A stretch of 63,994 nt of DNA, filler included, from Lenisia limosa (GCA_001655205.1; 13 parts of 13 records of this genome joined end to end with filler, not necessarily neighbours in it), one strand, 5' to 3'; shown: positions 9,001 through 47,359, counted from the whole stretch's first letter. Numbers and translations are program-made. Notes: generated from the letters alone by a model not told the origin.

Positions 9001-10009
9001 ATGACAAAACTGGGTCTTTTGATGTTGGCGTGATCTATTCGGTAAGTGATAGCTTCTTCTGGGAGTCTTTATTAGAAAAATACGGTGCTTGTTCAAACTG
9101 CTTATATGATATTTTCAAGAATAAATTGTCTTCCAAAATCACTTTTGCTCCAGGACGTAAGGTCATTTCATATGCTGGAAGAAAAAGGCATGAGTAGTTA
9201 GTAGTAGTTCTTTATTTTTTTTGGTTGTATTGGTTGTAGTAGTTGCTATTATTTAAGGTGAATGGAGATTTCCCCAGGGTTTCCCTGTGTGCACAGAGTT
9301 GTAAGGCAAATGATTGGGTGATTAATATTATACTATAATCCAATATCTCTTAAAAGCGTGATGGTGTGGAACGGCTTCGGCCAGATACATCTTTATTCTT
9401 ATGTTTTTATTCCATAAGCCTTCATGTCGAAAAAACCTCGAAAAAACCACTATACGTCATGCAATATAGTCTGCAGTTCACTGTTGGTTGACAATACATC
9501 TGGGCAAATCAAGGCAAATTCAAGGGGAAAGGTCCTGGAAAACTCTGATTGGTTTCGGACAGTTTCTTGTTTGCGGGTCAATTCGATTATGTCAACGATG
9601 ACCCGATGCCTTGGCCAATGTCAATGCCTCTTACCGCCAAACCGCCGAAAAACACGATTGCTTAGTTGCAAAAAAAACCAAAACAAATGGAGACCCTCTT
9701 GACATAGCATTTGGTGGTGTGTGAAAAAGTTGGTCCGTCTGATATCATAGTCCCGGATTGTTTGGATATGAGTATACTCGTGCTCTCTTGTTTATTTCAT
9801 CTAGTGTTTTAATAAAAGTTATTCCGCAAGGGAAGAAGACTTGGGAGGAAGAGAGACGGGCCCAATTAGTCAGCGTTCAGCTGGCAGACCGAGCCACAAT
9901 TGTCTTTCCCGCAAATCCTCAACCCTCAACCTCCAAATTTATGAAAGATTATTTATACTTGAAGAGATTACATATATTATGACGATTTAATAAGATCAAT
10001 TTATCGAGA

Positions 10010-10717
10010 ATGCCCTCACTGATGACTTTTAAACTCTTTCTGTGGGTTTTGCTTACAGTGACAGCTGTCCATGCCTCTGCTGCCATTACAGAGGCTGATT
10101 CTCCTCGTACATATGCGACTGGTAAGCTTTGAAGAGGAACACCATTCCTTATATTTAGGGATGTTTAGAGAGCTTGTTAATTCTTTGGAGCGCGCTTATG
10201 GCATGGTAGAGAACGATTTCTCTTTATTCCACTTGGATGTCACTTCAACGGAGGCTGTACTTCGAGTTTGTAAGCATTTGTCGTCACTATTCCTTCCTGT
10301 GACATTTTAGTTTTTGAAGACATGCACTTTGCTTTTACTGAGACGCTTGACAGATGCGGTTGGCTCACATTCCCTATTAAATACCTGCTGACCCTGTCTC
10401 ACCATTTAGATCTTCTAATTGGCTGTGAGAACCTTAATTGGGTACCCTTTGCGGGTTCTGCCCTTGTTCCAATCGTTTACATTCCGGAACAATCATTCCA
10501 AGAAGTGACCTTCTCTCAAGAAGTGATTTCTGGTATTTATTCCCAAGAAATAACTAGTATTAATGACACACGCATTTTGTCAAAGAATCCTGGTTTCAAA
10601 GAGGTTAGTTTTTGGGGGGCATTTTCCTGACGTTGCTTCAGGAGTTCAGTGCCAACGCAGACATCCCGCTTGTGCTTGTCATCAATGAGAACAGCGATGC
10701 CTTGGACCTTTTGAAAG
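10010..10717 (+). CDS. Spliced gene, putative secreted protein of unknown function (partial)
   Basis: MPSLMTFKLFLWVLLTVTAVHASAAITE is a signal-peptide-like start, followed by GT-AG-bounded coding segments. Confidence 0.35.
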
Positions 10718-11297
10718 GTGGGCTGGGAGGTTTCGGCTCTGACCGTTGGTGTTGTTGATTGGGGTTGGGATGAGGACTGCAACATAGCAATTGACTAAAT
10801 GGCCCCAATATCAATCGCATAGTTGTAATATATTACTATAATATGTTTTTTGGCAGAGCTTAAAAGAAATTAGTGCACACTGTGAGTTTTGGGTAGTTGG
10901 TTATACCAAATTGAACACATACAATAGAATACAGATGATGCACTGTCTGCGGTATGTCTTGATCGATTTATTTCTTGAGAAAATCTGATTATATTGGCCA
11001 AGACTTACCAGTCACTGTATTATACCAGTCAATGTTTGAAGTGGGGTCAGACCGAAAATTAATTCGTGATGTTCCGGGGCACTTCCGTCATTCAAACTGA
11101 ACCACAGCAACCTTTCACACTTAACATACTCGCTTTCAGCACAGCTTACACTATGTATGTATAATGTGTATTTGATTTTTTTGGATAGGTCACCAACAAC
11201 TATTCTCTATTCTTGTTATTATCCATCTTTTTGGAGGAATATCTTTTTGGAGGAATGTCTACCAAGTAAAATTGTGCGGCACGCGCTGTTGTTTGAC

Positions 11298-11397
11298 NNN
11301 NNNNNNNNNNNNNNNNNNNNNNNNNNNNNNNNNNNNNNNNNTTAATTAATTAANNNNNNNNNNNNNNNNNNNNNNNNNNNNNNNNNNNNNNNNNNNN
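11298..11397. other. Artificial scaffold-joining spacer N44-TTAATTAATTAA-N44 (first of 12)
   Basis: Identical 100-nt spacers with stops in all six frames start at 11298, 13846, 16145, 25229, 27008, 29063, 31376, 47195, 48611, 54609, 61555 and 62809. Confidence 0.97.
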
Positions 11398-14079
11398 GAC
11401 TTCAGAGAAGGTGCCCTCGCCCCTCCGTCCAAGCAGTCGGTATTCTGAGGTTAGGTTATGGCAGAATAAAACGGGCATTTTGAGCATTGTCATACGAAAG
11501 GTATAAACAAATGCCACAGCGTCAAATATTAATTTTCTTTGTTCATTAGGAGAAAGATAATAAGGGCTGGTGTTTGGAATCTAATGATGTCTAATAAGTA
11601 TCTAAAATATGAAGGGATAAAATAAGAAGGGTAATATAGATTATTTCACGGAACTGTTGAAGACATGAGATTGTAAACAACGCTGATAAAAGGCTATTTT
11701 TGTGATCACATGAATTTGTGAATATGCGTCATTTTAAGACAAAAAAAAAAGTGTTAAATGCTAAATAAGTCACAAGATGGAAAAAGGTAATTTTTAACAA
11801 ATAAACAATAAGAAGGAAAAGGATCAGTAATAACATTGTCATTATAAGGGAAAATGTCATTAGAATACCATTAAGTCCCAATATCAGATATGTTATTTCA
11901 GCAATATGAAGTAGATAGACAGCGACAAAAAGGGTCTACTGTTTCACTTTTGGTTCCTATATGTTATATGGGTTGAATTGGTCAATGTTTCATTGTAAAC
12001 ATGTAAAGCAGTGATTTTGATATTGTAATTAAAGAGGTTACAAAATATTATAAACATGAAGAGGCGAAAAGGTGATATTTAAAATGACAGAGCATACCGA
12101 GACGATATCATATGACATACTGAAAAGAGGCAGTGGTCGTTAATTATGACAGGTATGAATATTAGGAGTATAGAATGAGAGATAGGGATATTACGAAGAT
12201 AATATAGCAAAAATGCATATCGACGAGAAGATAATTGGCAGATAGAGATATATTCCTATGTTAGATATATCATGATGAGATGTCAGCTGATGCGTAAAGA
12301 ATCCAGGTAGATAATCCGAGCATGTCTTTATAAAACCGAAGAAAGTAAGATGCTCAACAGATTAAAAATATCAGAAACAGAAGTGAACGAATAGCGCCAA
12401 ACAATGACAAAAAGAGCGACATGAAATCGTAAGACAAAAGAGTGGTGTTGTGTGCCCCACAGAACACTCCACCCACAGCCAACAGGGAATCCCATATACG
12501 CATGAACAATTAATATTTCAATCAAGTAATCATTTCTGAACAACCCATATCTCGTTCAGAGTCTCCCCGTGCCTACTATGCATTCTCTGTCAGCCCCTTG
12601 AGGGCGACAACAGTGACTGTCAACTTCACATCATGGCGGCTCTTATATCGGGTCAACGTTAACAGTTTGCCAATAAAGAACACAGGGTACGACGAAAGGC
12701 GCTGGGGGAAGGCAGGGAGGTAAAAATTCCGACAGAGATTCTCTTGAGTTTGGAAGAAGTTTAGAAAACAGATTAAGTGGACTTGTTAAGTTGAGTTCTC
12801 AGTAGATCTGCAAGTTTTCATTGCTTAGAAAAAATAATCATTTATACCTTCGATATTTTTCGTTAATTTTCGATACACTCACAGGTTTTTCTAACGAGAA
12901 ATAATCCCTTTTTATGTTGAGTATATTATCTTATTATTGACCGCAGATTAAGAATAAAGTTGTATAAAGTCCGTAATCTTGAAATGTATTTCAGAATTTT
13001 TCATCATCCGTTTTCTGGACACCTAACATTGCGACAAGGCTCTTCTCTGCTTTAACTGCCTGATGAAATGATTCAAGACGATATCAAGTCGGTTCGAAGA
13101 TCCTCATTTGATTCCCTGCACTCCCACGAACCAGTTGCCATGCCGAGTCCGACGTCGACTCGCCCCTCATGGCTCCTCTCAGTGGCTATTATCTTCATTG
13201 TCGCCTTTGACTCTTCGCTTAACAGCTTCCTGTGTTTGGATGCCTTTGTTAAGGTTTGGGAGGCTTACATTCCTTTTAAGGCTAAGCATGCATATATTTT
13301 CTTTTTTAAACAATAAGGTTATTATTGATAGAATGATTTAGTTTTAAAGTGCATTATGAGCCTGATAAATAATCGATGTTTTTCTCATTTTTAAGACCTT
13401 TTAATAATAGGGCTGTTCTTTTGCTTTCCTTGTTTTCTTTTCTCTGTTTTTCTTGTGTAATTGGTATTGATATCTCGTTCTAAATACAACTATGTTGCTG
13501 CTTCTCTTTTCTTTAGTTCTAACTATGTTGCTGCTAATCTTTTCTTTAGTTCTATTACTTTTTTTTTGTTTCTTTCATTCAGTGAATGTTTTCAGTGTGA
13601 ACACATTCTATCGCTCAATTCGTCCCCTCCCCCAAAACTCGAATTTTTATTCTCAACAATTCTTTATCAGGTTTTTCGTTCTTCTCCTTCTCCTTTGTCA
13701 TTTGAATTTTCACATCTGTCTATTGATTGAAAAACCGTAATTTTCTCTCAAAATTGCCATTGTATTAGGCTTTTTGTCCTTCTTCTTCCTCTTTTTCATT
13801 GGTATTTCACCCCGCACCCCCGCGCGCGCATCACTTTTTTACCCCNNNNNNNNNNNNNNNNNNNNNNNNNNNNNNNNNNNNNNNNNNNNTTAATTAATTA
13901 ANNNNNNNNNNNNNNNNNNNNNNNNNNNNNNNNNNNNNNNNNNNNAGAAGGGTATTTCATTTGAGAATAACAGCCCATGAACAACAAACACCAACAACAA
14001 CAACTTTAAATAACAACAACAAACAACAATATTAATAACAATGATAATAATAATAACAACAACAATAACAATAATATCA

Positions 14080-31475: not shown

Positions 31476-31650
31476 CGATTGATATTGCTGAGTTCTGAAC
31501 AGCTGCAGTATCTAATATATTGTCTTCAACCACTTTTTGACTCACCCATTCTTTAGTTGCTAAGTTTGAAGTATCTATGTTTGTAGAAGTCGTGTTTATA
31601 GAGCCAGATCCGATTGTTGTGTTTTGAGAATAGTCACCGTGTAGTTCCAT
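31476..31650 (-). CDS. Putative virion fibre/spike protein, N-terminal 58 aa only (cut by scaffold edge)
   Basis: MELHGDYSQNTTIGSGSINTTSTNIDTSNLATKEWVSQK. ATKxWV resembles the ATKxYVD fibre repeat, and the gene lies directly downstream of the penton. Confidence 0.45.
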
Positions 31651-31679: not shown

Positions 31680-32438
31680 TTAATTAATTTCAATAATTAT
31701 TGTTGTAGAATCTCGAAGGCCATTTGGCATACCAAGAAGAACTCCGTTTTTGTTTGTTAATGAAAACTTCATCGAACTGATACTCGAAGAAGTCATTTTA
31801 TTTTTAATTTGAGTTAAATACTCCCTTGTGTAGCTTGCTAACTGGCCTGCCGCTACATTAATTGGAACAATTTCCATAATTGTTGAAACATCGGAATCAT
31901 TGTACTGACTTTCAATTCGGTTACAATGTACGTATACATTATCCAAACCGTTACTAAGGTCTGGAAAGTTTTCGGCTTCATGAATTACGTTGACAGTTTT
32001 ATCAACAAAAGCATCGTTTTCGACAACTTGAATAGTTTCAGTAGCACCAATGAGAACGTTTGATTCAAACCCGAAAAAGGACTTCATTTCCATTAAATCT
32101 AAAGTTACTCCTTCAAGTAACTGAATTCCAATTTTATAGGACCTAGTGTTTGAAGCAACATTTATCCAGTTGGGAGGAAGTTCAGGATAAAAGGCTTCGT
32201 TAATTTTTTCAGACAGCTTGTCAAAGCTGGAATATGAACCTGGTAAAATACTTCTTTCATATGTATTACCACCGTAGGTTACAGAAATTGAATTATTATC
32301 ATCGTTAATATTGTAGATGTAATTTGGAAAGGATAAATATTTAAGAGTCATAGTCGGATTAGATGACAATTTGAGAGAAGGATTGAATTCGATTTCATTT
32401 TCTGGACCAATGAATGTATATTTTAAAACTCGTGACAT
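31680..32438 (-). CDS. Minor capsid protein (penton, single jelly-roll)
   Basis: 252 aa with Polinton/PLV penton-type motifs FPNYIYNINDDNN, SILPGSY, NVYVHCNRIE and IMEIVPINVAAG. Same strand and cluster as the MCP. Confidence 0.85.
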   Translation of the reverse strand: MSRVLKYTFIGPENEIEFNPSLKLSSNPTMTLKYLSFPNYIYNINDDNNSISVTYGGNTYERSILPGSYSSFDKLSEKINEAFYPELPPNWINVASNTRSYKIGIQLLEGVTLDLMEMKSFFGFESNVLIGATETIQVVENDAFVDKTVNVIHEAENFPDLSNGLDNVYVHCNRIESQYNDSDVSTIMEIVPINVAAGQLASYTREYLTQIKNKMTSSSISSMKFSLTNKNGVLLGMPNGLRDSTTIIIEIN

Positions 32439-33145: not shown

Positions 33146-34555
33146 TTAGCTCTGTAAATCCGAATCCTCGACGAGTCTAGCATTTTTCTTTCTATCTTCT
33201 TTCTCTTTACGACGCATCGCAACAGTATCGAGTTTTTCGTTAAGTTCGAGTGGTGATTTATCGTTAACAATGGAAAATTTACCGTTACCATCACCGTCAT
33301 AAACAAGTGAAGCATCTTCATAAATTACCGTGTACATGTCGTAAACGTCGGTAGTTGCTTCTTCTAATTCAATAATATCTACAATCGTGTTATTTGTGTT
33401 TGTAAGGAACATATGTGTCCCAACTTCTGGTGTTGTTAGAACACTGTCAATCCAAATTCCACTGGTAGGGTCACGGAAATGCTTGCTACTTACCGGAAGT
33501 GGGGCTTTTAAGTCATCATACTTGCCACCGATGGATCGACGGAATCTATTAAAAGAAGGTGACACATCATTTTTCTCTAAATCATTTTCTTTACCCACGT
33601 CTGGGAATTGTTTTGAACCAATTTTACACGCGTGGTCTGTAATTCTTACCATAAATGGTCTCCATGGACGAGTGATATCGGGTTTAATAACAATAGTATC
33701 GATCAAACTTGCGTGGCTGTCAACAGTTCCAATTGACTTAGTTTTGGTTAAATTTGTTGGAATAGTGGTAGGATTAACATGGATCTTGGTGAAAGAAGTG
33801 GGGTAAGTCATACCTAATTTTTTAATTTTGTCTAAATACGATGCAGTCCCTTTGTTAGTGAGGTGAAGTTCACGTGCAGCTAAAATGATATTATCACGGT
33901 AGAGATGATTAGCCACAGCCACTGAGTTTTGCTCCATACTACCGATAATTGAATCGGCGCTTGTTTTAAAAGTAATATCAAACTGGTAAGTCTGTCCACC
34001 GGGTAACACGTAGTTTTCTTGAAAATAAGGGAAAAGTGCTCTTAAATGAATTTCACGATATACCCAGGCATTGTTTTTATATTTGCTAGTTCTTTTAGTA
34101 AGTTCCGTTGCAGTCTCTCCATCAAGGCGACTGTTGAAGATAAATTCATTTTCACCACCGTTTTCCAGGTAGTCGTCGTTATAGTATTTATGTTTTACAA
34201 TTTCTCCAATGATTTCTGGTTCTTCAATTTTTCCTAACACTTCTTTACCATTACATTTGATTGTAATTTCTTTAATTTGTGAATAACTAGAGTCTTTACA
34301 ATAAGCACCTGTGACTTCATGAGTTCCTGTATCGACATAATCTCCACCTAATTTTGTGAGTGAGATTTTTTCAGTCCACGAAAAGATAAAATTCGAACAT
34401 TCGAGAAATGTGGGATTTTCATCAGTGGTAGAACCTCCAATTCGGAAAGTATACTGGTCGCCTGAATTATTGGACGCTTCTTGGCGGACGTCTACAGCGC
34501 TTTCAATTTCGCTATTAATTGTTTTGTCATTAAATCTAAATATTCTGTCGGTCAT
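33146..34555 (-). CDS. Major capsid protein (double jelly-roll, Maverick/Polinton type)
   Basis: 469 aa, beta-rich. NNSGDQYTFRI..SNFIFSWTEKI..SQIKEITIKCNGKEV..YYNDDYLENGG..REIHLRALFPYF..LPGG..FDITF matches the Polinton MCP pattern, and the gene sits next to the penton. Confidence 0.85.
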   Translation of the reverse strand: MTDRIFRFNDKTINSEIESAVDVRQEASNNSGDQYTFRIGGSTTDENPTFLECSNFIFSWTEKISLTKLGGDYVDTGTHEVTGAYCKDSSYSQIKEITIKCNGKEVLGKIEEPEIIGEIVKHKYYNDDYLENGGENEFIFNSRLDGETATELTKRTSKYKNNAWVYREIHLRALFPYFQENYVLPGGQTYQFDITFKTSADSIIGSMEQNSVAVANHLYRDNIILAARELHLTNKGTASYLDKIKKLGMTYPTSFTKIHVNPTTIPTNLTKTKSIGTVDSHASLIDTIVIKPDITRPWRPFMVRITDHACKIGSKQFPDVGKENDLEKNDVSPSFNRFRRSIGGKYDDLKAPLPVSSKHFRDPTSGIWIDSVLTTPEVGTHMFLTNTNNTIVDIIELEEATTDVYDMYTVIYEDASLVYDGDGNGKFSIVNDKSPLELNEKLDTVAMRRKEKEDRKKNARLVEDSDLQS

Positions 34556-35303: not shown

Positions 35304-36737
35304 CTAGTTGATGTATTTCTTAATTTGGAATAAGGGAATTCCTTTATTTTTGAGGGCATATATTAATTTAGCCTGGCTTTTACGAGTGAAACTATTAGAA
35401 TCGTTACTACCGTTGCCTTGTTTTATAAGTGCTGTAACTCGTTTTAGTTCTTCGACAATACGTTTCTTCGACCAGCTATTGGGAATATCGATTACTTTAG
35501 GTTCTTCGCTGAGAATTTTGAACTTTTCAGAACGTGGCCTAGCTTCTAGATTCCCGTGACCAACAACTTCTTTAAGTATCTTTTTAGATTTGTCTGAAAA
35601 ATTGTCGTTCTGATTCAACCTCTGCTTGGTAAGGAATCGGACAACTTCCTTGTCAACTGGTTCATGAATTTTACATTCACCGTCGACCATTAGATGTAGT
35701 ATATTATTGTGAAGGAGATCACCGACGTTGATTTCTGCCTCGCCTAATTTTCCATCGTTCGTTACGCAATAGTTACAGTGACTGGGTTGACGACGGGAAT
35801 AACCTTCACCTACAACAGTCATGTCTTTTCCATCTGTAATACTCTTATAAACGATATCGAAGAATTCATTTGGGGATATTTTTAGAGCAGTTCCAAAATC
35901 ACTGAGTGTTTTACCTGGTTGCGATGTTCCGTCTTTTATCCAGTCAAAACCCATATTAAATCCTAACTTTTGTCTTTTTGTGTTGTTGATGGAAGCTTTA
36001 TCTGGAGTGGAACTAGCGTTGTTTATACTGTACTTTTCTCCCAACCAATAAGCGAGCAATGAAGCTTTTTTCGTGGGGGATGAATTGTTGTATGTTTTAC
36101 CATGATTTTCCATCACATTTTTTACATTACTAAAGTAGTTTACAAGTAGGTTCTTGGTTTGCCGAGTGACAGCTAGTGACACAGTGTCATCGATTTTAAA
36201 GGAATGTCTTCCGTCTTTACCTATAAACCAACCGTCACCGTGCTTCACGGTAAAGAAGTCTCTTACTATATCCTCTTTAGGCTTAAAAAGATGTCTTGGT
36301 TTAACTGGTGTGTCGTCATCATCATCATCATCTTCTTCTTCTTTTTTAGGAGTTGAGTACTCGGGTTTACCAGCAATACGTACTCCCACTGGTCGGGGAA
36401 TAATGGAAGGAATTCTTGTAGCTGGTGCCATAGCGGGTGCTGTAGTTGTCGGGACGGCAGCAGTTTCCTTTTCTAAGGCAAACTTAATATCAGAAACGTC
36501 TTCTCGAATGGCACGGTTTTGTTCCATGGCCGTATTATACTTGAATTCTTTGTCTTTATTGATTTCGGCAGTAATTTTCTTTGATTTTTCTAAAGCATTC
36601 CTTTGAACACTGGTTTTTTTGGTATCAATATTGCCTCTATCATCCAGAATTACCGCATGTTGGGTTTGTTTATATTGGTCAGTTAGTTTTATTAACTTTT
36701 TTAGGGTAGATTGTTCTTTAAGAAGGTCTTCGTACAT
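35304..36737 (-). CDS. Uncharacterised viral protein, 477 aa
   Basis: Long intact ORF with a coiled-coil N-terminus and acidic tract. The C-terminal RIVEELKRVTALIKQGN..LIYALKNKGI resembles the conserved tail of an uncharacterised Maverick protein. Confidence 0.7.
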   Translation of the reverse strand: MYEDLLKEQSTLKKLIKLTDQYKQTQHAVILDDRGNIDTKKTSVQRNALEKSKKITAEINKDKEFKYNTAMEQNRAIREDVSDIKFALEKETAAVPTTTAPAMAPATRIPSIIPRPVGVRIAGKPEYSTPKKEEEDDDDDDDTPVKPRHLFKPKEDIVRDFFTVKHGDGWFIGKDGRHSFKIDDTVSLAVTRQTKNLLVNYFSNVKNVMENHGKTYNNSSPTKKASLLAYWLGEKYSINNASSTPDKASINNTKRQKLGFNMGFDWIKDGTSQPGKTLSDFGTALKISPNEFFDIVYKSITDGKDMTVVGEGYSRRQPSHCNYCVTNDGKLGEAEINVGDLLHNNILHLMVDGECKIHEPVDKEVVRFLTKQRLNQNDNFSDKSKKILKEVVGHGNLEARPRSEKFKILSEEPKVIDIPNSWSKKRIVEELKRVTALIKQGNGSNDSNSFTRKSQAKLIYALKNKGIPLFQIKKYIN

Positions 36738-36804
36738 TGTTGTTCTTTAACTGTAAATAAATACTTAAAAAAATTTTTTTTATTTTGTTTTTTTTTTACT
36801 AAAA

Positions 36805-38040
36805 ATGGAAAGTCGGAAAAAGCAATTCCTTGAGAACACAGAAAAACAACGAAATGAACAACAACATAATTCACCATTAACACCTTCTGGATGCGTAAGA
36901 ACCTTGATCATAGGAGGGTCTGGAAGCGGAAAAACAACAAGCTTTGTATATGATATTTTACCTGATAGAAAGTCTTCTGGTTATTTAATTTATTGTAGTA
37001 ACCCAAATCAACCCGTACTCAAAGATTTGAAGGCTTATGCTGATAGTAAAAACCTCTATTTTGAAATTATAACCAATTGGACAATAAATCCAACAATGAT
37101 TGAAGAATTAGCACGGGAAAATGCGTCAAAGGGTATAAGTTTTGAAGTTATTTTTGATGACGTGTCTGACAAGTCAAACTTTAAAACTATAGTTCCTCTT
37201 TTCACGGCTGGTCGGCATTACAATATTAGTCCAACACTTATTGTACACAAACTTAAAACAAATGCTAATCTTAACGAAATTAAGGACTCTTGTAATGCAT
37301 TTTACTCTTTTGGGTCTGGGTTGTCACAGGCTACTTTCTGTAAGTTTGCCAGGGACCTTCTCGACATCACTAACACAGAAATGAATAAAACTCACAATAA
37401 ACTTATGACGAGGGCGAAGAAAAATGGATTTCCCTTTTGCCTAGCAGTTTTCCCTGAGGAACCACATGACTACATGCGACTTCGGGCAGGTCATCGCGGA
37501 ATAATTTGGGACAGACTAAGTCCGGCAGAAAAAGAAGCCTTTGGGGTAGATCCCATTGATGGGGTGATCGAAATACCAACAGAATCGGAGACCAAGTCCA
37601 TTGACAAGAATTCAAAACCTCTATCAAATAAGGAAATAGATAATCATTTTGGTAGGCGTGTATGTTATATGAGTAACGAAGACTTTGTACTAGATAACTT
37701 CTTAGTCATCAACACGGGTAACCTCAAGGAAGAAACAGAAGGAGGTGTTCACTGGGTACTAATCTACAAATTGACCGACAAACTGGTTTTCTATTTTGAT
37801 AGTTTCGGTAATGAAGTTGACAACGAGTTAATTGGTAAACTTAAAGACTTTGAAGTTGTTAGAAACGACCTACAAATACAAGAAGACACATCTGCTTTGT
37901 GTGGGTACTACTGTATATCTGTAGCCGAATTACTTGACAAAAATGTCCCTTACTACCACTTGTACAAATACTTTAGCGGACCTTCAGAACAAAAAAATAA
38001 TATTAGTTTCCTTAATAATACGGCTCACGGTATAGAATAA
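36805..38040 (+). CDS. Fused A32/FtsK-like packaging ATPase and Ulp1/adenain-like cysteine protease
   Basis: ATPase: Walker A GGSGSGKTT (36913-36939), Walker B VIFDD and LFTAGRHYNIS. Protease, in the same frame: VINTG..GGVHWV..FYFDSFG..QIQ..LCGYYC (His-Asp-Gln-Cys). Confidence 0.93.
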   Translation: MESRKKQFLENTEKQRNEQQHNSPLTPSGCVRTLIIGGSGSGKTTSFVYDILPDRKSSGYLIYCSNPNQPVLKDLKAYADSKNLYFEIITNWTINPTMIEELARENASKGISFEVIFDDVSDKSNFKTIVPLFTAGRHYNISPTLIVHKLKTNANLNEIKDSCNAFYSFGSGLSQATFCKFARDLLDITNTEMNKTHNKLMTRAKKNGFPFCLAVFPEEPHDYMRLRAGHRGIIWDRLSPAEKEAFGVDPIDGVIEIPTESETKSIDKNSKPLSNKEIDNHFGRRVCYMSNEDFVLDNFLVINTGNLKEETEGGVHWVLIYKLTDKLVFYFDSFGNEVDNELIGKLKDFEVVRNDLQIQEDTSALCGYYCISVAELLDKNVPYYHLYKYFSGPSEQKNNISFLNNTAHGIE

Positions 38041-40114: not shown

Positions 40115-40238
40115 ATTGTTTATAGGAAATTTTTTTTTTTTTTTTTTTTNNNNNNNNNNNNNNNNNNNNNNNNNNNNNNNNNNNNNNNNNNNNNNNNNNN
40201 NNNNNNNNNNNNNNNNNNNNNNNNNNNNNNNNNNNNNN

Positions 40239-40490: not shown

Positions 40491-40664
40491 TGTTTTAAGA
40501 TAAATTTTTTTTATTTTTTTTTTATTTTTTTTTTAAAAATCAACAATTCTTTCATATTTAAATTTTCTCCATGGTAATTTAAATAATCTACTAAACGAAA
40601 AACAACTATCGGCTTTTTTTGTTTCATCCTGACCAATTGGTATTCCCGAAACCCAACTTCCACT

Positions 40665-41330
40665 TCATCTATGATGTCTCCCAGACCAAAGCGCACTCTT
40701 GTTAATATCAGAATTGTTTTTCATTTCTTCCGAACAATATTTTAAAGCATCACCATCTCTCGCAACAGCTTCCCTACAAACATAATAATTGTTTTTCATT
40801 TCTTCCGAACAATATTTTAAAGCATGTGGGTCTTTCCTCACAGCTTCCCTACAAATATCATAATCACTTTTCATTTCTTCCGAACAATATTTTAAAGCAT
40901 CACCATCTCTCGCAACAGCTTCCATACAAATACCATAATCATTTTTCATTTCTTTCGAACAATATTGTAAAGCATGTGGGTCTCCCCTCACAGCTTCCCT
41001 ACAAATATCATAATCATTTTTCATTTCTTTCGAACAATATTGTAAAGCATGTGGGTCTCCCCTCACAGCTTCCATACAAATATCACGAACATTTTTCATT
41101 TCGTCTGACAACGATTCAAAAACATCACCAGCGGTATTGACAATAGCTTGCTTGCAAATATCAGAATTATTTTTCATATCTTCCGAACAATATTTTAAAG
41201 CATATCCGCTATTACAGACAGCTGTCAAACAAATATCATAATTATTTTTCATATCATCTGAACAATTTTCTAAGGCGTATCCATTCTTTCCAACTCTCTC
41301 CTTGCAATCTTCATAATCATTATAAGTCAT
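40665..41330 (-). CDS. DUF4116-like repeat protein (8 x about 25 aa)
   Basis: Repeat unit DICxEAVxxDxxALxYCSxEMKNDY, visible as a 75-bp DNA tandem repeat. Confidence 0.85.
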   Translation of the reverse strand: MTYNDYEDCKERVGKNGYALENCSDDMKNNYDICLTAVCNSGYALKYCSEDMKNNSDICKQAIVNTAGDVFESLSDEMKNVRDICMEAVRGDPHALQYCSKEMKNDYDICREAVRGDPHALQYCSKEMKNDYGICMEAVARDGDALKYCSEEMKSDYDICREAVRKDPHALKYCSEEMKNNYYVCREAVARDGDALKYCSEEMKNNSDINKSALWSGRHHR

Positions 41331-41472
41331 CTTTATAGGAAAATTAAAATTCTTTTTTTTTATTATTTTTTTAAAAAAACGAGGTCTTTCTTAAAATTCA
41401 TGATTTTCAAAACAGGTCGTTTTTTTAAAAAAACACAAGTGGAAAAAAAAGAATTTTAATTTTCTTTAAAGG

Positions 41473-44400
41473 ATGGACGACTTGGAGAAAATGATTCGCG
41501 ATGAAGAAAAAAGAAATGCTCGCCGTAAGAGACAAAGAACATACGACTTTGGGTCAACATATTTAAACAAATTCATTAAACTAACAGAAGAAACCGATAT
41601 AGATTTTAAGGACATCGACATTTTAAACGATATACAAATGAAAAAACTAAGGGAAAAAAATGACTATGTTTTGGTGTCCGGACATTTAACCCTAGTATAC
41701 CATAAACAAGGTACAGGGGCTGAAGAACGTGAAAAGTCCTTTTGTCGTAATTGGCGTGGTGATCGTCAAATATTAGTTAACATATACGGAGAAAATCTCC
41801 CAGCTGAACCAGAAGGCAGAATGGACAACGACGTAAAATACTTTGGAAAAAATTTTACATACTTAATTCCCAAAAATACAAACATAGAAACCGAAGTTAT
41901 AACACAAACAGTTGAAACAGGTACTGTAGTAATAGTCCAAAACGGTTACGATGGACAGCTTGCCTATGTTGACAATGTTACAATAGATATTATTGAAAAG
42001 CCTACAGTCAGTGACCTTCTCATGAAGAGTTCAACTGATAACCTATGCCTCATTCACTGTATTGCCACCGCACTTGCTGGCAAAAAATACTATAAGTCAA
42101 AGAACTTTAACACTTTTCTCAAGGAATTCCGTGCTATAAGTAAAAAAGAAGATTCATTCAGTCTTCATGACCTCGAATGTTGGACACAGAATAATAAATA
42201 TGTGAAGTTTGTTATCGTTGGCTCTAACAATAGGAAACTCAGAGAGATAGGTGTCCCCAAAACAGCACATCATACAATCGGGCTTTACTACCATAACGAA
42301 CACGTTGAACTCATCTCCCCGGAGGACTTACGAAGAGTGGCCCAAGTCCAAGACGACTGTCTTCTTAGTATTAAAAACCAACGACAAAAGATAGAAATCA
42401 AAGGCAAGGAATGTTGTTACACTGGACAAAACACATGTTTCCAAAACGGTGAAACAACAATTGTCAATGAAATTTTCAACGACGAATTTATTGCTACCAA
42501 GAAGGCAGAAGGATATAGTATTATTTATGTTGATGAATACCATTTGAAGAAATACTTGGCAACTGTGAATGATATTAATCAAATTGAGGTTAATGCTAAG
42601 GGAAGCGTTGTACGGGTCGTAGTTAATGAAGTTATTTTAGAAGTAAAAAGAGAAGAAGAAGATACTTTCAAGCAAAAACGTGACAAAGTATATAAAGACT
42701 ACCCTTATGAAAACATTCAGGAAACTAGAACATTTGCCGCCCTAACGACCGCTCTCAGTGATTGTATTCTAGGTCAGATTCCTAAATCATACTATAACGA
42801 AGAGGTTAGACAACTTCAATACACTCACTTTGTTGGTCCAAGAACTGGACGAGTTTCAAACGAGGAAGAAGAAGTTGAAGTCGACTTAAAACGCTGCTAC
42901 CGTAATATACTTTATGACAATAAACACCCCTTTCCCATCTTTCAAAGCGTTGATAGCTTTGTTAGAATTGGTGAAATTAGTTCTACTGATGTTGTTCCTG
43001 GTGAATACATTGTGGCTCAACCATTTGAAATTTGCGGAGTTCCCATTGGGGCTGGAATTCTAAACTACGTTCTTATTAAGAAAGCCCTAGAGTGTTGGGA
43101 GAAAGGCCATCCTCGTACTACTAAGCCTGAAATTAGTCACGTTATGAAGGCTAGAAGAACTATAAAGGCTGACACTTTCAAACCACTTCTAAAGTATATT
43201 ACTGAGGAGTTAGACGATATCAAACGTATGCCGAATGAACTTACTGGACTACTCAACAAAAGAATCAGGCGTGAAACAGCAACCTACCTGGAAAAGAATG
43301 AACAACAAGTTTACTTCCAAATGTATCACAACTTCGATAAGGGTATTAAAACTAAACTTATAAATGTCTGTAAAAACGTCAACATTGTACATGAAACGAA
43401 AGAAATTCCCTTAAACAGCTGTCATTCTTCGATTTATCGCCAGATTATCCACCAGTGCTTCCTTCGACTTGCTGAAATCAATTTTACTATTGATGACTAT
43501 TCCAGCATTGTTGCTTATAAAACAGATGCAGTTTTCTATAAAAATACTGACTCTTTAGTTAATGTGAACAAGCTACCTTTCACAATTCATGTAAGTGAGA
43601 GTTATTCCAGACTTAAGAAACCAGTTAAAGTTAAGAAGAGTCAGCCACTTCCCAAAGAAGCTGCATGGAACAATGTTACTGAAGTTAATACTGAGGAAAA
43701 CTGTCTTGTTACTGGAATGCCTGGCTGTGGTAAAACAACTCTCTTATGTAAGCTCTACGAGAAGTTTGTGTCCGAAGGCAAATCAGTGGTGTGTCTCGCT
43801 TTTACTAATTTTGCTGTGTCGAATCTCAAAGACAGAGGCTGCAACGAGGCCTATACTTTGGACAGTTACTTCTTCAAAAGAAAAACAACAATCAAGAAAT
43901 ATGATGTTTACCTCATCGATGAATTCAGTACAATTTCAGCCATTCTCATGGGAAGGCTAATTAAACATTGCGGAGGTTCCTTAGTTTATCTCTTTGGTGA
44001 CCCAAACCAGTTACCATCTGTGGCTGAAAATAACTACAACTACGTCAATAACAAAGTGATCTGCCAGTGGATGAAAAACTTTTATAAAATGAAGTACATT
44101 GAAGCCTCTGGAAGGTACGACAACAAGATGAAAGAAATCCTCGAAAAGTTTACTGAAGATGGTGTATTGGACACAACACACTTTAAAGATATTGATTGGT
44201 CACTCGAAACAAACATTACGTTCACCAATGAACTTAGAAAGAAGATTAACCACCAACACTCTGCCTCGTCAAGTCAAAAGATAATTGCTACCAAGAATGT
44301 TCCTCCCAAGATTTTCAACTCCCAGATCTTTAAACGTATTGGTGAAAATACTGTACTACGAAATGAGAAAACTATTGAGCTCACAGACATACAGATTATT

Positions 44401-45186
44401 AATGCCGAGTTTGAACCTGCATACGCTATTACTTCCCATAAAATTCAAGGTACAACCCTGGAAGAAGACTACAACATCCATGTTGAAATGAAACCGGACG
44501 GAAAGACACCATACTTTAACAGAAATGCTTTATATGTCGCACTTTCTCGTTGCAAGACTGCAGATCAAATCCATATCACACAAGTAAACGGAGTAAAGTT
44601 TCATCCTGAAAAAGAAGATGATATCGTAAACATGAAACTTAGAAAGCCTGAAAAAGCTCTTATCTACAAAATCTACAATAAAGATGGTTCAGAATACGTT
44701 GGTAGTACTGTATGCGGACCTAGCCAAAGCGAGAAAGCTCGTTTGGAAAAACGATTCAAAGAACACGAAAGAGATGAAACACTTGCCTGGAAAAGGAACA
44801 TGGATAGAATTGAACTTCTTACCAGGGTTTACTACCACAACAAGGAGGAAATTGAAAGTCGATGGGAAAAGAAATTTATTGGTCAAATCACTGTAGAGTG
44901 TAACAATATTCGCTGTGTCAGTAAATGTGCTCCCACTAAAGGGTTTATTGAGCTACAAGAGGTCAGTACCCCTCTTCCAAAAGTTAATGATAACGGTAAA
45001 CAACTTAGATGTAAGTCAGGAGGAATAGATATAGTTGCCAAGTATGACGGAAGTGAAGATGGTCGTCAGAAAGCAATGAAAAAAATTTATAAAAAAATAG
45101 AAATTAAAATGAATAATATTTTATTACAAAGCAGATGGAACAGTTGTGGAATAAATATGGGTTCATGTCAAAAAATCGATTTATAG
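41473..45186 (+). CDS. Replication polyprotein: vOTU-like protease domain, protein-primed family B DNA polymerase, SF1 (RecD/Pif1-like) helicase and GIY-YIG nuclease
   Basis: DNLCLIHC/NEHVELI; PolB motifs DLKRCY (42883), KRMPNELTG (43222), YKTDAVF (43516); helicase GMPGCGKTT (43714), IDEFS, FGDPNQLP, AYAITSHKIQG, YVALSR; IYKIYNKDGSEYVGST (44662). Confidence 0.9.
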   Translation: MDDLEKMIRDEEKRNARRKRQRTYDFGSTYLNKFIKLTEETDIDFKDIDILNDIQMKKLREKNDYVLVSGHLTLVYHKQGTGAEEREKSFCRNWRGDRQILVNIYGENLPAEPEGRMDNDVKYFGKNFTYLIPKNTNIETEVITQTVETGTVVIVQNGYDGQLAYVDNVTIDIIEKPTVSDLLMKSSTDNLCLIHCIATALAGKKYYKSKNFNTFLKEFRAISKKEDSFSLHDLECWTQNNKYVKFVIVGSNNRKLREIGVPKTAHHTIGLYYHNEHVELISPEDLRRVAQVQDDCLLSIKNQRQKIEIKGKECCYTGQNTCFQNGETTIVNEIFNDEFIATKKAEGYSIIYVDEYHLKKYLATVNDINQIEVNAKGSVVRVVVNEVILEVKREEEDTFKQKRDKVYKDYPYENIQETRTFAALTTALSDCILGQIPKSYYNEEVRQLQYTHFVGPRTGRVSNEEEEVEVDLKRCYRNILYDNKHPFPIFQSVDSFVRIGEISSTDVVPGEYIVAQPFEICGVPIGAGILNYVLIKKALECWEKGHPRTTKPEISHVMKARRTIKADTFKPLLKYITEELDDIKRMPNELTGLLNKRIRRETATYLEKNEQQVYFQMYHNFDKGIKTKLINVCKNVNIVHETKEIPLNSCHSSIYRQIIHQCFLRLAEINFTIDDYSSIVAYKTDAVFYKNTDSLVNVNKLPFTIHVSESYSRLKKPVKVKKSQPLPKEAAWNNVTEVNTEENCLVTGMPGCGKTTLLCKLYEKFVSEGKSVVCLAFTNFAVSNLKDRGCNEAYTLDSYFFKRKTTIKKYDVYLIDEFSTISAILMGRLIKHCGGSLVYLFGDPNQLPSVAENNYNYVNNKVICQWMKNFYKMKYIEASGRYDNKMKEILEKFTEDGVLDTTHFKDIDWSLETNITFTNELRKKINHQHSASSSQKIIATKNVPPKIFNSQIFKRIGENTVLRNEKTIELTDIQIINAEFEPAYAITSHKIQGTTLEEDYNIHVEMKPDGKTPYFNRNALYVALSRCKTADQIHITQVNGVKFHPEKEDDIVNMKLRKPEKALIYKIYNKDGSEYVGSTVCGPSQSEKARLEKRFKEHERDETLAWKRNMDRIELLTRVYYHNKEEIESRWEKKFIGQITVECNNIRCVSKCAPTKGFIELQEVSTPLPKVNDNGKQLRCKSGGIDIVAKYDGSEDGRQKAMKKIYKKIEIKMNNILLQSRWNSCGINMGSCQKIDL

Positions 45187-46190
45187 ATTTTGTTTTAGGT
45201 GTAACGGATAAGTTTAGTAAAGAAGAAATATCAAAATACATAGATCACCAAGGAGAGCACGACTTATACAAAGCAAGAAGTAACCAGAAGAAATACTTTA
45301 GTCACTTCCCAGAATTTAAAGAAAACAAAGACAGGTATCAGTTGGATGTTTTGTATCTAGCAGGAAAGCATTATAATAGTTTAGCCCTTGTCTGTATTGT
45401 TATAAGGTCTCGATACCTCTGTATGCGACCAATAAAAAACACAAGTGCTGCTGAAACTTATAAGGCCTATCAAAGTATTTGTCAAGAAGTAGGAACTCCA
45501 GTTTCAGTTCAAGTCGACAGTGGAAGCGAGTTCGTAAATAAACTATGGAAGGAAAAACTGCCACCAACAGTTCTAATAGTAAACGACCCCTATGAAAAAA
45601 ATCAAAACGCCTATGTGGAGCGTGTTAACAAAACTATTTCAAAACCATTCTATGAAAGGATGAAGCGTATCGAGAATGTAACCGGAGGGCCGTCCACACA
45701 GTGGATTGAATTTTTAGCCGACCAAGTCTATTCCTATAACAGAACTACTCATTCAACGATCAAGCAAAAACCTTATGATGTACAGTTTAATGGTAAAACA
45801 CCAGCAAAACAAGAATGGAAGAAAGTACCCGAAGGTAAGTTGAAGACAGGTGATTTCGTGAGAGTTTTTATAGGTGATAAGGATTATAACAGGCATGTCT
45901 CGCCAATCTGGTCTGAAGAAATCTATGTTATCAAGTATTCATATAAGAATGGGCCTTACAACCCGACACGCTATCAAATTGCTCGATCTTATAGCTCTAC
46001 AATCGAACCTTTAACAAAATACGAATGGGAGCTATTGAAAGTCGAAAGTCTACAAATGAAACCAAATCTTGAGGGATTAAACGTTAAAAAGCCTGCTAAA
46101 CCAAGGAAAACTATTCAAGAGAACACTAGAAGTAAAAGAAAAGAGAGAAGACCAGAGAAGAAGAACAGATCTGGGTTAGTAAGAGAGTAA
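45135..46190 (+). CDS. Retroviral-type (rve) DDE integrase of Maverick type
   Basis: YQLDVLY (D 45345), QVDSGSEF (D 45516), NAYVERVNKT (E 45618), YNRTTHSTIK and the C-terminal LKTGDFVRV..WSEEIYVI. Catalytic triad intact. Confidence 0.95.
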   Translation: MEQLWNKYGFMSKNRFIDFVLGVTDKFSKEEISKYIDHQGEHDLYKARSNQKKYFSHFPEFKENKDRYQLDVLYLAGKHYNSLALVCIVIRSRYLCMRPIKNTSAAETYKAYQSICQEVGTPVSVQVDSGSEFVNKLWKEKLPPTVLIVNDPYEKNQNAYVERVNKTISKPFYERMKRIENVTGGPSTQWIEFLADQVYSYNRTTHSTIKQKPYDVQFNGKTPAKQEWKKVPEGKLKTGDFVRVFIGDKDYNRHVSPIWSEEIYVIKYSYKNGPYNPTRYQIARSYSSTIEPLTKYEWELLKVESLQMKPNLEGLNVKKPAKPRKTIQENTRSKRKERRPEKKNRSGLVRE

Positions 46191-46813: not shown

Positions 46814-47359
46814 CATGGCCGCCAGAAGATGTTTTGATAACCTCCGAAAGAGACAATCCCGAGTGAAAATCACACGCAATACCATCGTTGAAAAAATACG
46901 TGGCTTTTTGCAAACAATTGCAATAATCTCTGAGTAAACATTTCGGCGTAATTCCTCTTCAATGTGTCTTTTCATTGAGCGGGTTGCAATATATTATTAT
47001 TATTTTTGAAAAGGGTGATTAGCATGCTGAAATCGTACTAAAACTTAATTAAGCTATGTATCCAAGTAACTACAATAATTATACCCGGGGCTTCAGTCTG
47101 ATTGTCATCCGAAATCGTAGAAGGCGTTCTTAGCTAAGCTAATGCTTGATTAAGTTAAGCCACTTACCTAAGTAACAACAAATGGAGAGGAGATNNNNNN
47201 NNNNNNNNNNNNNNNNNNNNNNNNNNNNNNNNNNNNNNTTAATTAATTAANNNNNNNNNNNNNNNNNNNNNNNNNNNNNNNNNNNNNNNNNNNNGGGGGG
47301 GGGGGACACTAGTAACAGTAACGAACCAACTCAGAAATCGATTAAACCGTCTCTCTCAC

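Follow-up and report, generated by a model that had tools for sequence, protein, structure and literature searches.

Can a virus carry the motor that packages its genome and the protease that matures its capsid on one polypeptide chain? The question is raised by a single gene in a stretch of DNA from Lenisia limosa (GCA_001655205.1), referred to below as the window, which comprises 63,994 nucleotides (nt), including the filler that joins its 13 parts. The gene occupies positions 36805..38040 on the plus strand (stop codon included) of one piece of the window, within a small, virus-like DNA element, probably of a protist, and its product of 411 amino acids (aa) combines a packaging ATPase, a linker and a cysteine protease, as recognised from the open reading frame (ORF), Pfam matches and an orthologue. 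ATPases of the A32 type assemble into rings and drive DNA into preformed capsids, and viral proteases of clan CE process precursors by cutting capsid and core proteins; the recruitment of the maturation protease to the procapsid in viruses of the adenovirus, virophage and polinton types, and its timing relative to packaging, are understood only in part. The best explanation of the locus, which is given a probability of about 0.7 as a whole, is that a genuine fused gene encodes two working domains whose tethering is the functional consequence, and that the fusion has been evolutionarily retained in a small group of Tlr1-like polinton-like viruses (PLVs).

One reading frame, two domains

The frame opens with ATG and continues through 411 codons with zero internal stops. 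A preliminary description of this DNA had placed Walker A and B motifs and the sequence LFTAGRHYNIS in roughly the first 235 aa of the ORF, which is borne out by the translation and by a Pfam Pox_A32 match above the 22.8-bit cut-off (31.4 bits for the whole fusion protein and 33.5 bits for aa 1-235). The A32/FtsK-HerA-type packaging ATPase domain spans aa 1-235 (36805..37509, plus strand), as delimited by Pfam, profile, AlphaFold2 (AF2), Foldseek and alignment evidence. In the translation of the same strand, Walker A (GGSGSGKT) lies at aa 37-44 (36913-36936), Walker B (VIFDD) at aa 115-119 (37147-37161), and the arginine-finger motif GRHYNIS at 37210-37230, inside LFTAGRHYNIS (aa 132-142). The two domains were aligned separately; MAFFT misaligned the fusion when it was mixed with single-domain relatives. 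In the ATPase alignment of 13 sequences, which holds both known fusion proteins (the second is described below) and 11 free-standing ATPases of 189-276 aa, the residues G37, G42, K43, D118, D119 and R137 are invariant in all 13, and the 11 free-standing ATPases terminate at the same point as the ATPase domain of the fusion.

The fold of this domain is modelled with confidence as the ASCE/RecA-like fold of viral packaging ATPases. In the full-length AF2 model, aa 21-235 reach a predicted local distance difference test (pLDDT) score of 80-90, and a profile built from the ATPase alignment matches, over nearly its full length, the B204 packaging NTPase of Sulfolobus turreted icosahedral virus (STIV; E = 4e-5), with HerA matched too. 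Foldseek searches of the PDB with the full-length model return the FtsK motor, KaiC and B204 (target-normalised TM-score 0.57), while those of BFVD return viral ATPases, namely the A32-like enzymes of Medusavirus and Tupanvirus, those of Sputnik V3 and a Yellowstone Lake virophage (YSLV5), the FtsK-HerA ATPase of mavirus, and adenovirus IVa2. The fold, both Walker motifs and the arginine finger are common to the fusion and to the free-standing A32-like ATPases of virophages, polintons, PLVs and giant viruses and adenovirus IVa2 (for example, Sputnik V3, mavirus MV15 and STIV2 B204); the domain of about 230 aa is the same, but only in the fusion is the chain continued by a linker and a protease.

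The second domain, an adenain-like cysteine protease of clan CE, occupies aa 271-411 (37615..38037, plus strand) according to profiles and alignment. The alignment of catalytic residues identifies His316 (37750-37752), Asp332 (37798-37800), Gln359 (37879-37881) and Cys366 (37900-37902), all on the plus strand, so that the complete H-D-Q-C protease announced in the preliminary description is present; His, Gln and Cys never vary across the 86 aligned sequences (the fusion and 85 relatives), and Asp varies little (at least 90% conserved). The motifs GGVHW, FDSFG, QIQ and LCGYYC are legible in the last third of the translated fusion protein. Pfam Peptidase_C5 scores 21.8 bits for aa 261-411 alone against a cut-off of 21.3 bits, and 18.0 bits, under that cut-off, for the whole fusion protein; 56 of the 86 aligned sequences match Peptidase_C5 and 19 match Peptidase_C48. 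A profile of the protease family matches adenain (E = 8e-12), pS273R of African swine fever virus (ASFV; 4.5e-10), SENP8 (1.3e-5) and also chlamydial Dub1 in the PDB, and the profile alignment places H316, D332, Q359 and C366 in the catalytic columns of adenain. The Foldseek lists for the full-length model were taken up by matches to the ATPase domain. The order His-Asp-Gln-Cys is shared with proteases of the adenain, mavirus MVP and ASFV pS273R type (Peptidase_C5, C48), as is the spacing of 7 between Gln and Cys with adenain, and the N-terminal helix that opens the protease core of about 140 aa is found again in about 110 free-standing metagenomic relatives; in comparison with the adenain, MVP and pS273R type, only the protease of the fusion is not free-standing.

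This N-terminal helix also bears on the notion that the protease is additionally made alone from an internal start within the fused ORF. An in-frame methionine, Met289, is kept in both fusion proteins and could serve such a start; however, it falls past the helix (L-S-N-x-E-I) that opens the free-standing proteases, and no A/T-rich promoter-like tract precedes it, which renders a separate protease product very unlikely.

Between the domains lies an acidic, variable linker that is predicted to be disordered (aa 236-270; 37510..37614, plus strand), with pLDDT below 50 at aa 246-264 in the AF2 model. The linker had been described as roughly 40 aa long, with no stop and no A/T tract; the latter two features stand, and the length is nearer 35 aa. 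Its DNA, with a G+C content of 0.457, is the most G+C-rich stretch of the fusion gene and has a longest A/T run of 5, in comparison with a G+C content of 0.075-0.27 in the element's nine intergenic spacers, where A/T runs are mostly 21-41 (two are shorter, at 8 and 11); judged by base composition and A/T runs, no spacer or promoter-like A/T tract was found within the fusion gene. The ORF, the domain motifs and the linker features taken together are far beyond chance, and the fusion gene is real and in frame, with both domains apparently intact in their catalytic motifs.

Retention, rarity and origin of the fusion

An erroneous joining of two genes by an assembly or sequencing artefact, through an indel or a lost stop, is the first alternative to be considered, and the sequence is indeed carried by one assembly alone. 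The window piece, including the whole fusion gene, shows 100% identity with an independent contig, NODE_1472 (L002), of the public ENA assembly ERZ3820729. Moreover, a word-index search and a HMMER scan both recovered an orthologue, P0002 (437 aa), which is 38-44% identical to the fusion at 97% query coverage, has the same architecture, and sits on a 29-kb contig (L001) from that assembly; 10 genes stand in one and the same order on this contig and in the fusion's element, at 26-45% amino-acid identity. By region, identity between the fusion and P0002 falls from 55% (protease) through 42% (ATPase core) to 20% (linker); the linker contains 13 gap columns, every one in frame, and no conserved motif. 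Two domains under constraint with a free linker between them would be expected to look like this, and, to judge from the two sequences, the fusion is retained across a deep divergence. Because constrained domains and a free linker stay in frame over this divergence, an artefact is ruled out in practice: a second element, 38% identical, keeps the unbroken architecture despite several in-frame linker indels, the linker DNA is without the A/T-rich spacer signature seen between most other genes, and the public contig agrees across the entire fusion gene. The frame described earlier is accordingly upheld, and an artefactual origin is considered extremely improbable.

The architecture is extremely rare. 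HMMER was run exhaustively over 1.84 billion representative proteins and gave 553 matches at E <= 0.001; among the best 150 of these, only the fusion and P0002 span both domains. When the best 150 of the 553 matches were re-scored with domain hidden Markov models (HMMs), a protease domain was found in 139, of which 113 are free-standing proteins (<= 200 aa) and 26 are extended, and the ATPase and protease occurred together only in the fusion (P0001) and P0002. These counts agree with the statement that the two proteins are normally encoded by separate genes, and, among the same best 150 matches, with the expectation that such fusions would not prove common, none being found besides P0002. Pattern scans for relatives of the fusion in IMG/VR, JGI metagenomes, GTDB genomes and a phage collection found none, and an ATPase-protease fusion is unmentioned in the full text of the polinton, PLV and virophage literature searched. 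The parts are familiar, and the architecture appears new.

Two candidates for further relatives were rejected, namely P0005 (2107 aa, E = 2e-14), which is a translated tandem repeat, and P0084, which at 412 aa matches the fusion's size and has no ATPase. Since 26 of the 139 protease-bearing proteins are extended, the protease domain combines readily with other sequences in small eukaryotic DNA viruses. For instance, P0019 joins the protease to an L544-like nucleotidyltransferase, with the A32 ATPase as the next, separate gene on its contig, and P0105 joins it to a methylase/phospholipase, whereas neither has the ATPase partner of the fusion; the same holds for P0084 and P0052, in which a Gly-Gly-rich extension precedes the protease. 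In these two metagenomic proteins the protease stands at the C-terminus of extensions of 200-300 aa with repeated Gly-Gly-Phe sites and hydrophobic stretches, and they look like precursor-plus-protease fusions of another kind.

Domains are often shuffled in these viruses, and ATPase and protease genes are natural neighbours. In a related metagenomic contig (L004), the protease and the A32 ATPase are separate, adjacent and convergent; in another (L005) they are separate and one gene apart; and in a third (L007) a protease-bearing gene is followed by the A32 ATPase 24 nt downstream on the same strand. In mavirus-type elements the gene order is ATPase-PRO (PMC8547959). Because relatives keep the two genes close together and the mavirus order is the same as that of the fused domains, the fusion likely originated, in the simplest account, through the loss of a stop codon and a spacer between two adjoining morphogenesis genes. 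As side observations on these contigs, L007 encodes at 10001-13071 a 781-aa protein with a protease domain and an L544-like nucleotidyltransferase domain and also carries a protein-primed DNA polymerase (pPolB, DNA_pol_B_2), and a 154-aa gene lying upstream of the closest free-standing ATPase (L006) was considered as a protease and rejected. The fusion extends to the morphogenesis module a domain shuffling that has been seen mostly in the replication proteins of such viruses.

Proposed consequences of the tether

According to the preferred explanation, one transcript would yield one 47-kDa chain in which the ATPase is connected through a flexible linker of about 35 aa to the maturation protease. 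The ATPase ring would dock on the procapsid and pump in the linear genome, and each ring subunit would bear a tethered protease; the tether would fix the ratio of motor to protease at 1:1 and concentrate the protease at the packaging vertex during DNA entry, thereby tying the cleavage of capsid and core precursors to packaging. Both protease and ATPase are contained in mavirus virions (PMC6048507). In a stronger form of this model, the chain stays uncut, and the ATPase ring at the packaging vertex would carry a crown of tethered proteases, with DNA entry and maturation physically coupled; this form is plausible and is put forward tentatively. The preliminary description had likewise suggested such a coupling and an uncleaved linker. 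If true, it would represent a delivery of the protease to the capsid unlike that of the separate proteases of adenovirus and mavirus.

Alternatively, the fusion may be a self-processing precursor, in which the protease, acting in cis or in trans, cleaves the single translation product where the domains meet; the freed ATPase and protease would then act as they do elsewhere, the fusion setting stoichiometry and timing and nothing more. Such a precursor would suit the precursor-processing role of clan CE viral proteases, and family members P0084 and P0052 end long extensions holding Gly-Gly sites. The mavirus protease cleaves GG|X and GX|G (PMC6048507). However, the linker had been noted to contain no GG site, and in fact neither GG nor GxG occurs between the domains in either fusion protein (411 aa and 437 aa), the linker being only 20% identical and devoid of a conserved motif. 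The only small-residue pair between the domains that is kept in both fusion proteins is Ala228-Gly229 at the end of the ATPase domain, which leaves a cut at the domain boundary possible; yet in the ATPase alignment this pair is part of a C-terminal motif that is also present in free-standing ATPases and is therefore ancestral ATPase sequence rather than a new cleavage site. On balance, a self-processing precursor is regarded as doubtful.

Several points weigh against the reading of a genuine fused gene with two working domains. The fusion proteins depart from their 11 free-standing relatives at two positions: the sensor, aa 148 (37246-37248), is His in both instead of the Gln present in all 11, and aa 160 (37282-37284), in the I-R-x-N motif downstream, is Lys in both instead of the Arg present in all 11. 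With these replacements, which are a feature of the fusion, full motor activity is not certain. In the full-length AF2 model, the protease part reaches only moderate confidence (pLDDT 55-79), and both fusion-bearing elements come from one assembly, ERZ3820729. Moreover, capsid genes, including those for a double jelly-roll major capsid protein and a penton, gave no match in the element through Pfam, PHROGs or PDB profiles.

The two substitutions would also suit the notion that one domain is a relic, such as an ATPase that lacks motor activity and merely docks the protease on the capsid; an inactive protease is the converse form of the same idea. In the A32-like family, the third motif consists of the arginine finger and "a polar residue, mostly glutamine" (PMC11703096); the fusion keeps the arginine finger, and its sensor His is still polar, though not Gln. 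Walker A and Walker B are likewise intact, and the helicase is the sole other P-loop NTPase match in the element's window part. As for the protease, its four catalytic residues are intact and it is the better conserved of the two domains. A relic domain is accordingly judged unlikely.

For the genuine fused gene with two working domains, the natural covalent link between motor and protease would be a hint that both act at the same place and time, and its maintenance over a deep divergence provides a defined object for examining the coupling of motor and protease.

The element and its other genes

The element is linear and about 17.6 kb long when L002:1-1914 is joined to the window piece. Its right terminal inverted repeat lies at 47108..47189, and the partner, at L002:1-84, is off the window piece; the repeat comprises 80 nt at 98.75% identity, and both public contigs end at the terminal inverted repeat. 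No inverted repeat appeared in the portion of contig NODE_320 that was covered. NODE_1472 and NODE_320, which are diverged sister elements, have nearly equal assembly coverage (34.2x and 35.8x), so both could reside in one host genome or be co-replicating.

Replication genes occupy the right part of the element. A replication protein of 1237 aa (41473..45186, plus strand) contains a helicase domain of superfamily 1B (SF1B; Pif1/RecD-like), as indicated by Pfam and Pif1/RecD matches, with Viral_helicase1/AAA_19/AAA_30 matched at aa 735-1029 in Pfam, and resembles its Tlr1 counterparts in size and architecture; relatives of this protein were not found in JGI metagenomes or IMG/VR. Its C-terminal part of about 190 aa (44600-45186) is kept in both elements, gives no Pfam match and, by eye, resembles a small nuclease-type domain; a domain of this type has been described for Tlr1 helicases (PMC12220804, PMC3671162). 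The neighbouring gene at 45135..46190 (plus strand) is a candidate rve-family integrase by a weak Pfam match (E = 1.6e-4; 22.4 bits, under the 32.6-bit cut-off) that is repeated in the orthologue, and PHROG transposase families match as well. DNA_pol_B and DNA_pol_B_2 had no match in any ORF of the element's window part.

The element was previously labelled a Maverick, a term that proves imprecise. Because a large SF1B helicase protein is present and there is no recognisable pPolB gene, the gene content fits a Tlr1-like PLV and not a classical Maverick (PMC5499653, PMC11161782). Like Tlr1 elements and Tlr1-like PLVs, the element combines an SF1B helicase protein, a putative rve integrase and an A32 ATPase, is bounded by terminal inverted repeats and, at about 17.6 kb, falls within the 15-40 kb range of that group; it differs from them in that a protease is present and fused to the ATPase, and in that its capsid genes are not recognisable. 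Tlr1 and most PLVs have been described as being without a maturation protease (PMC5499653, PMC11161782), so that the fusion documents a protease in a lineage of Tlr1-like PLVs, a group usually described as lacking one.

Candidates for structural genes were assigned on general features. On the minus strand, a conserved gene of 469 aa (33146..34555) is a major capsid protein candidate by size, conservation and position alone, and a conserved gene of 252 aa (31680..32438), 45% identical to its orthologue, is a penton candidate by size and position alone. For these capsid candidates, tblastn against the phage collection and scans of IMG/VR gave nothing, and word-index searches gave the self match alone; a single-sequence AF2 model of the 469-aa candidate, at a pLDDT of 32.5, is meaningless. 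The first 58 codons of a 642-aa gene lie at 31476..31650 (minus strand), where the gene is cut by the edge of the piece, and the gene is complete at L002:161-2089; its product is repeat-rich and, by eye only, fibre-like.

The gene divergent from the fusion gene encodes 477 aa (35304..36737, minus strand), with a run of Asp, a Pro-rich stretch and a variable centre. The element also encodes a C2H2 zinc-finger protein and several genes that are conserved in the two elements and have no database match. No broken gene is present in the window piece, and Rfam gave no match within it. At about 40150-40238 the piece has 89 N in place of 92 bases in L002; they hide the C2H2 zinc-finger gene's 3' part and the sequence preceding the start of a 409-aa gene. 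At 40665..41330 (minus strand), a DUF4116 repeat protein of 221 aa has six repeats with a DNA period of 75 nt; the underlying 75-nt tandem repeat extends over window positions 40629-41358, and more short repeats near 40780-40930 probably explain why L002 ends there. In the literature, neither DUF4116 nor the sample accession pointed to a host.

Most spacers are short and very A/T-rich. The divergent spacer on the 5' side of the fusion gene (36738..36804) has a G+C content of 0.12 and probably holds the promoters of both flanking genes. A motif recurs before ATG, composed of a run of T, then C-T-A or CCTATAAA, then 1-6 nt; it is seen at the ATGs at 31650, 32438, 36805, 38469, 40114, 41330 and 41473, and at L001:9462. 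For the fusion gene it reads ACTAAAAATG, with which the divergent spacer ends, and for its orthologue TTTTCTACAAAATG. This motif recalls the late-promoter-type signals of giant viruses and virophages and, if it is of that type, would suggest that the element may depend on a giant virus.
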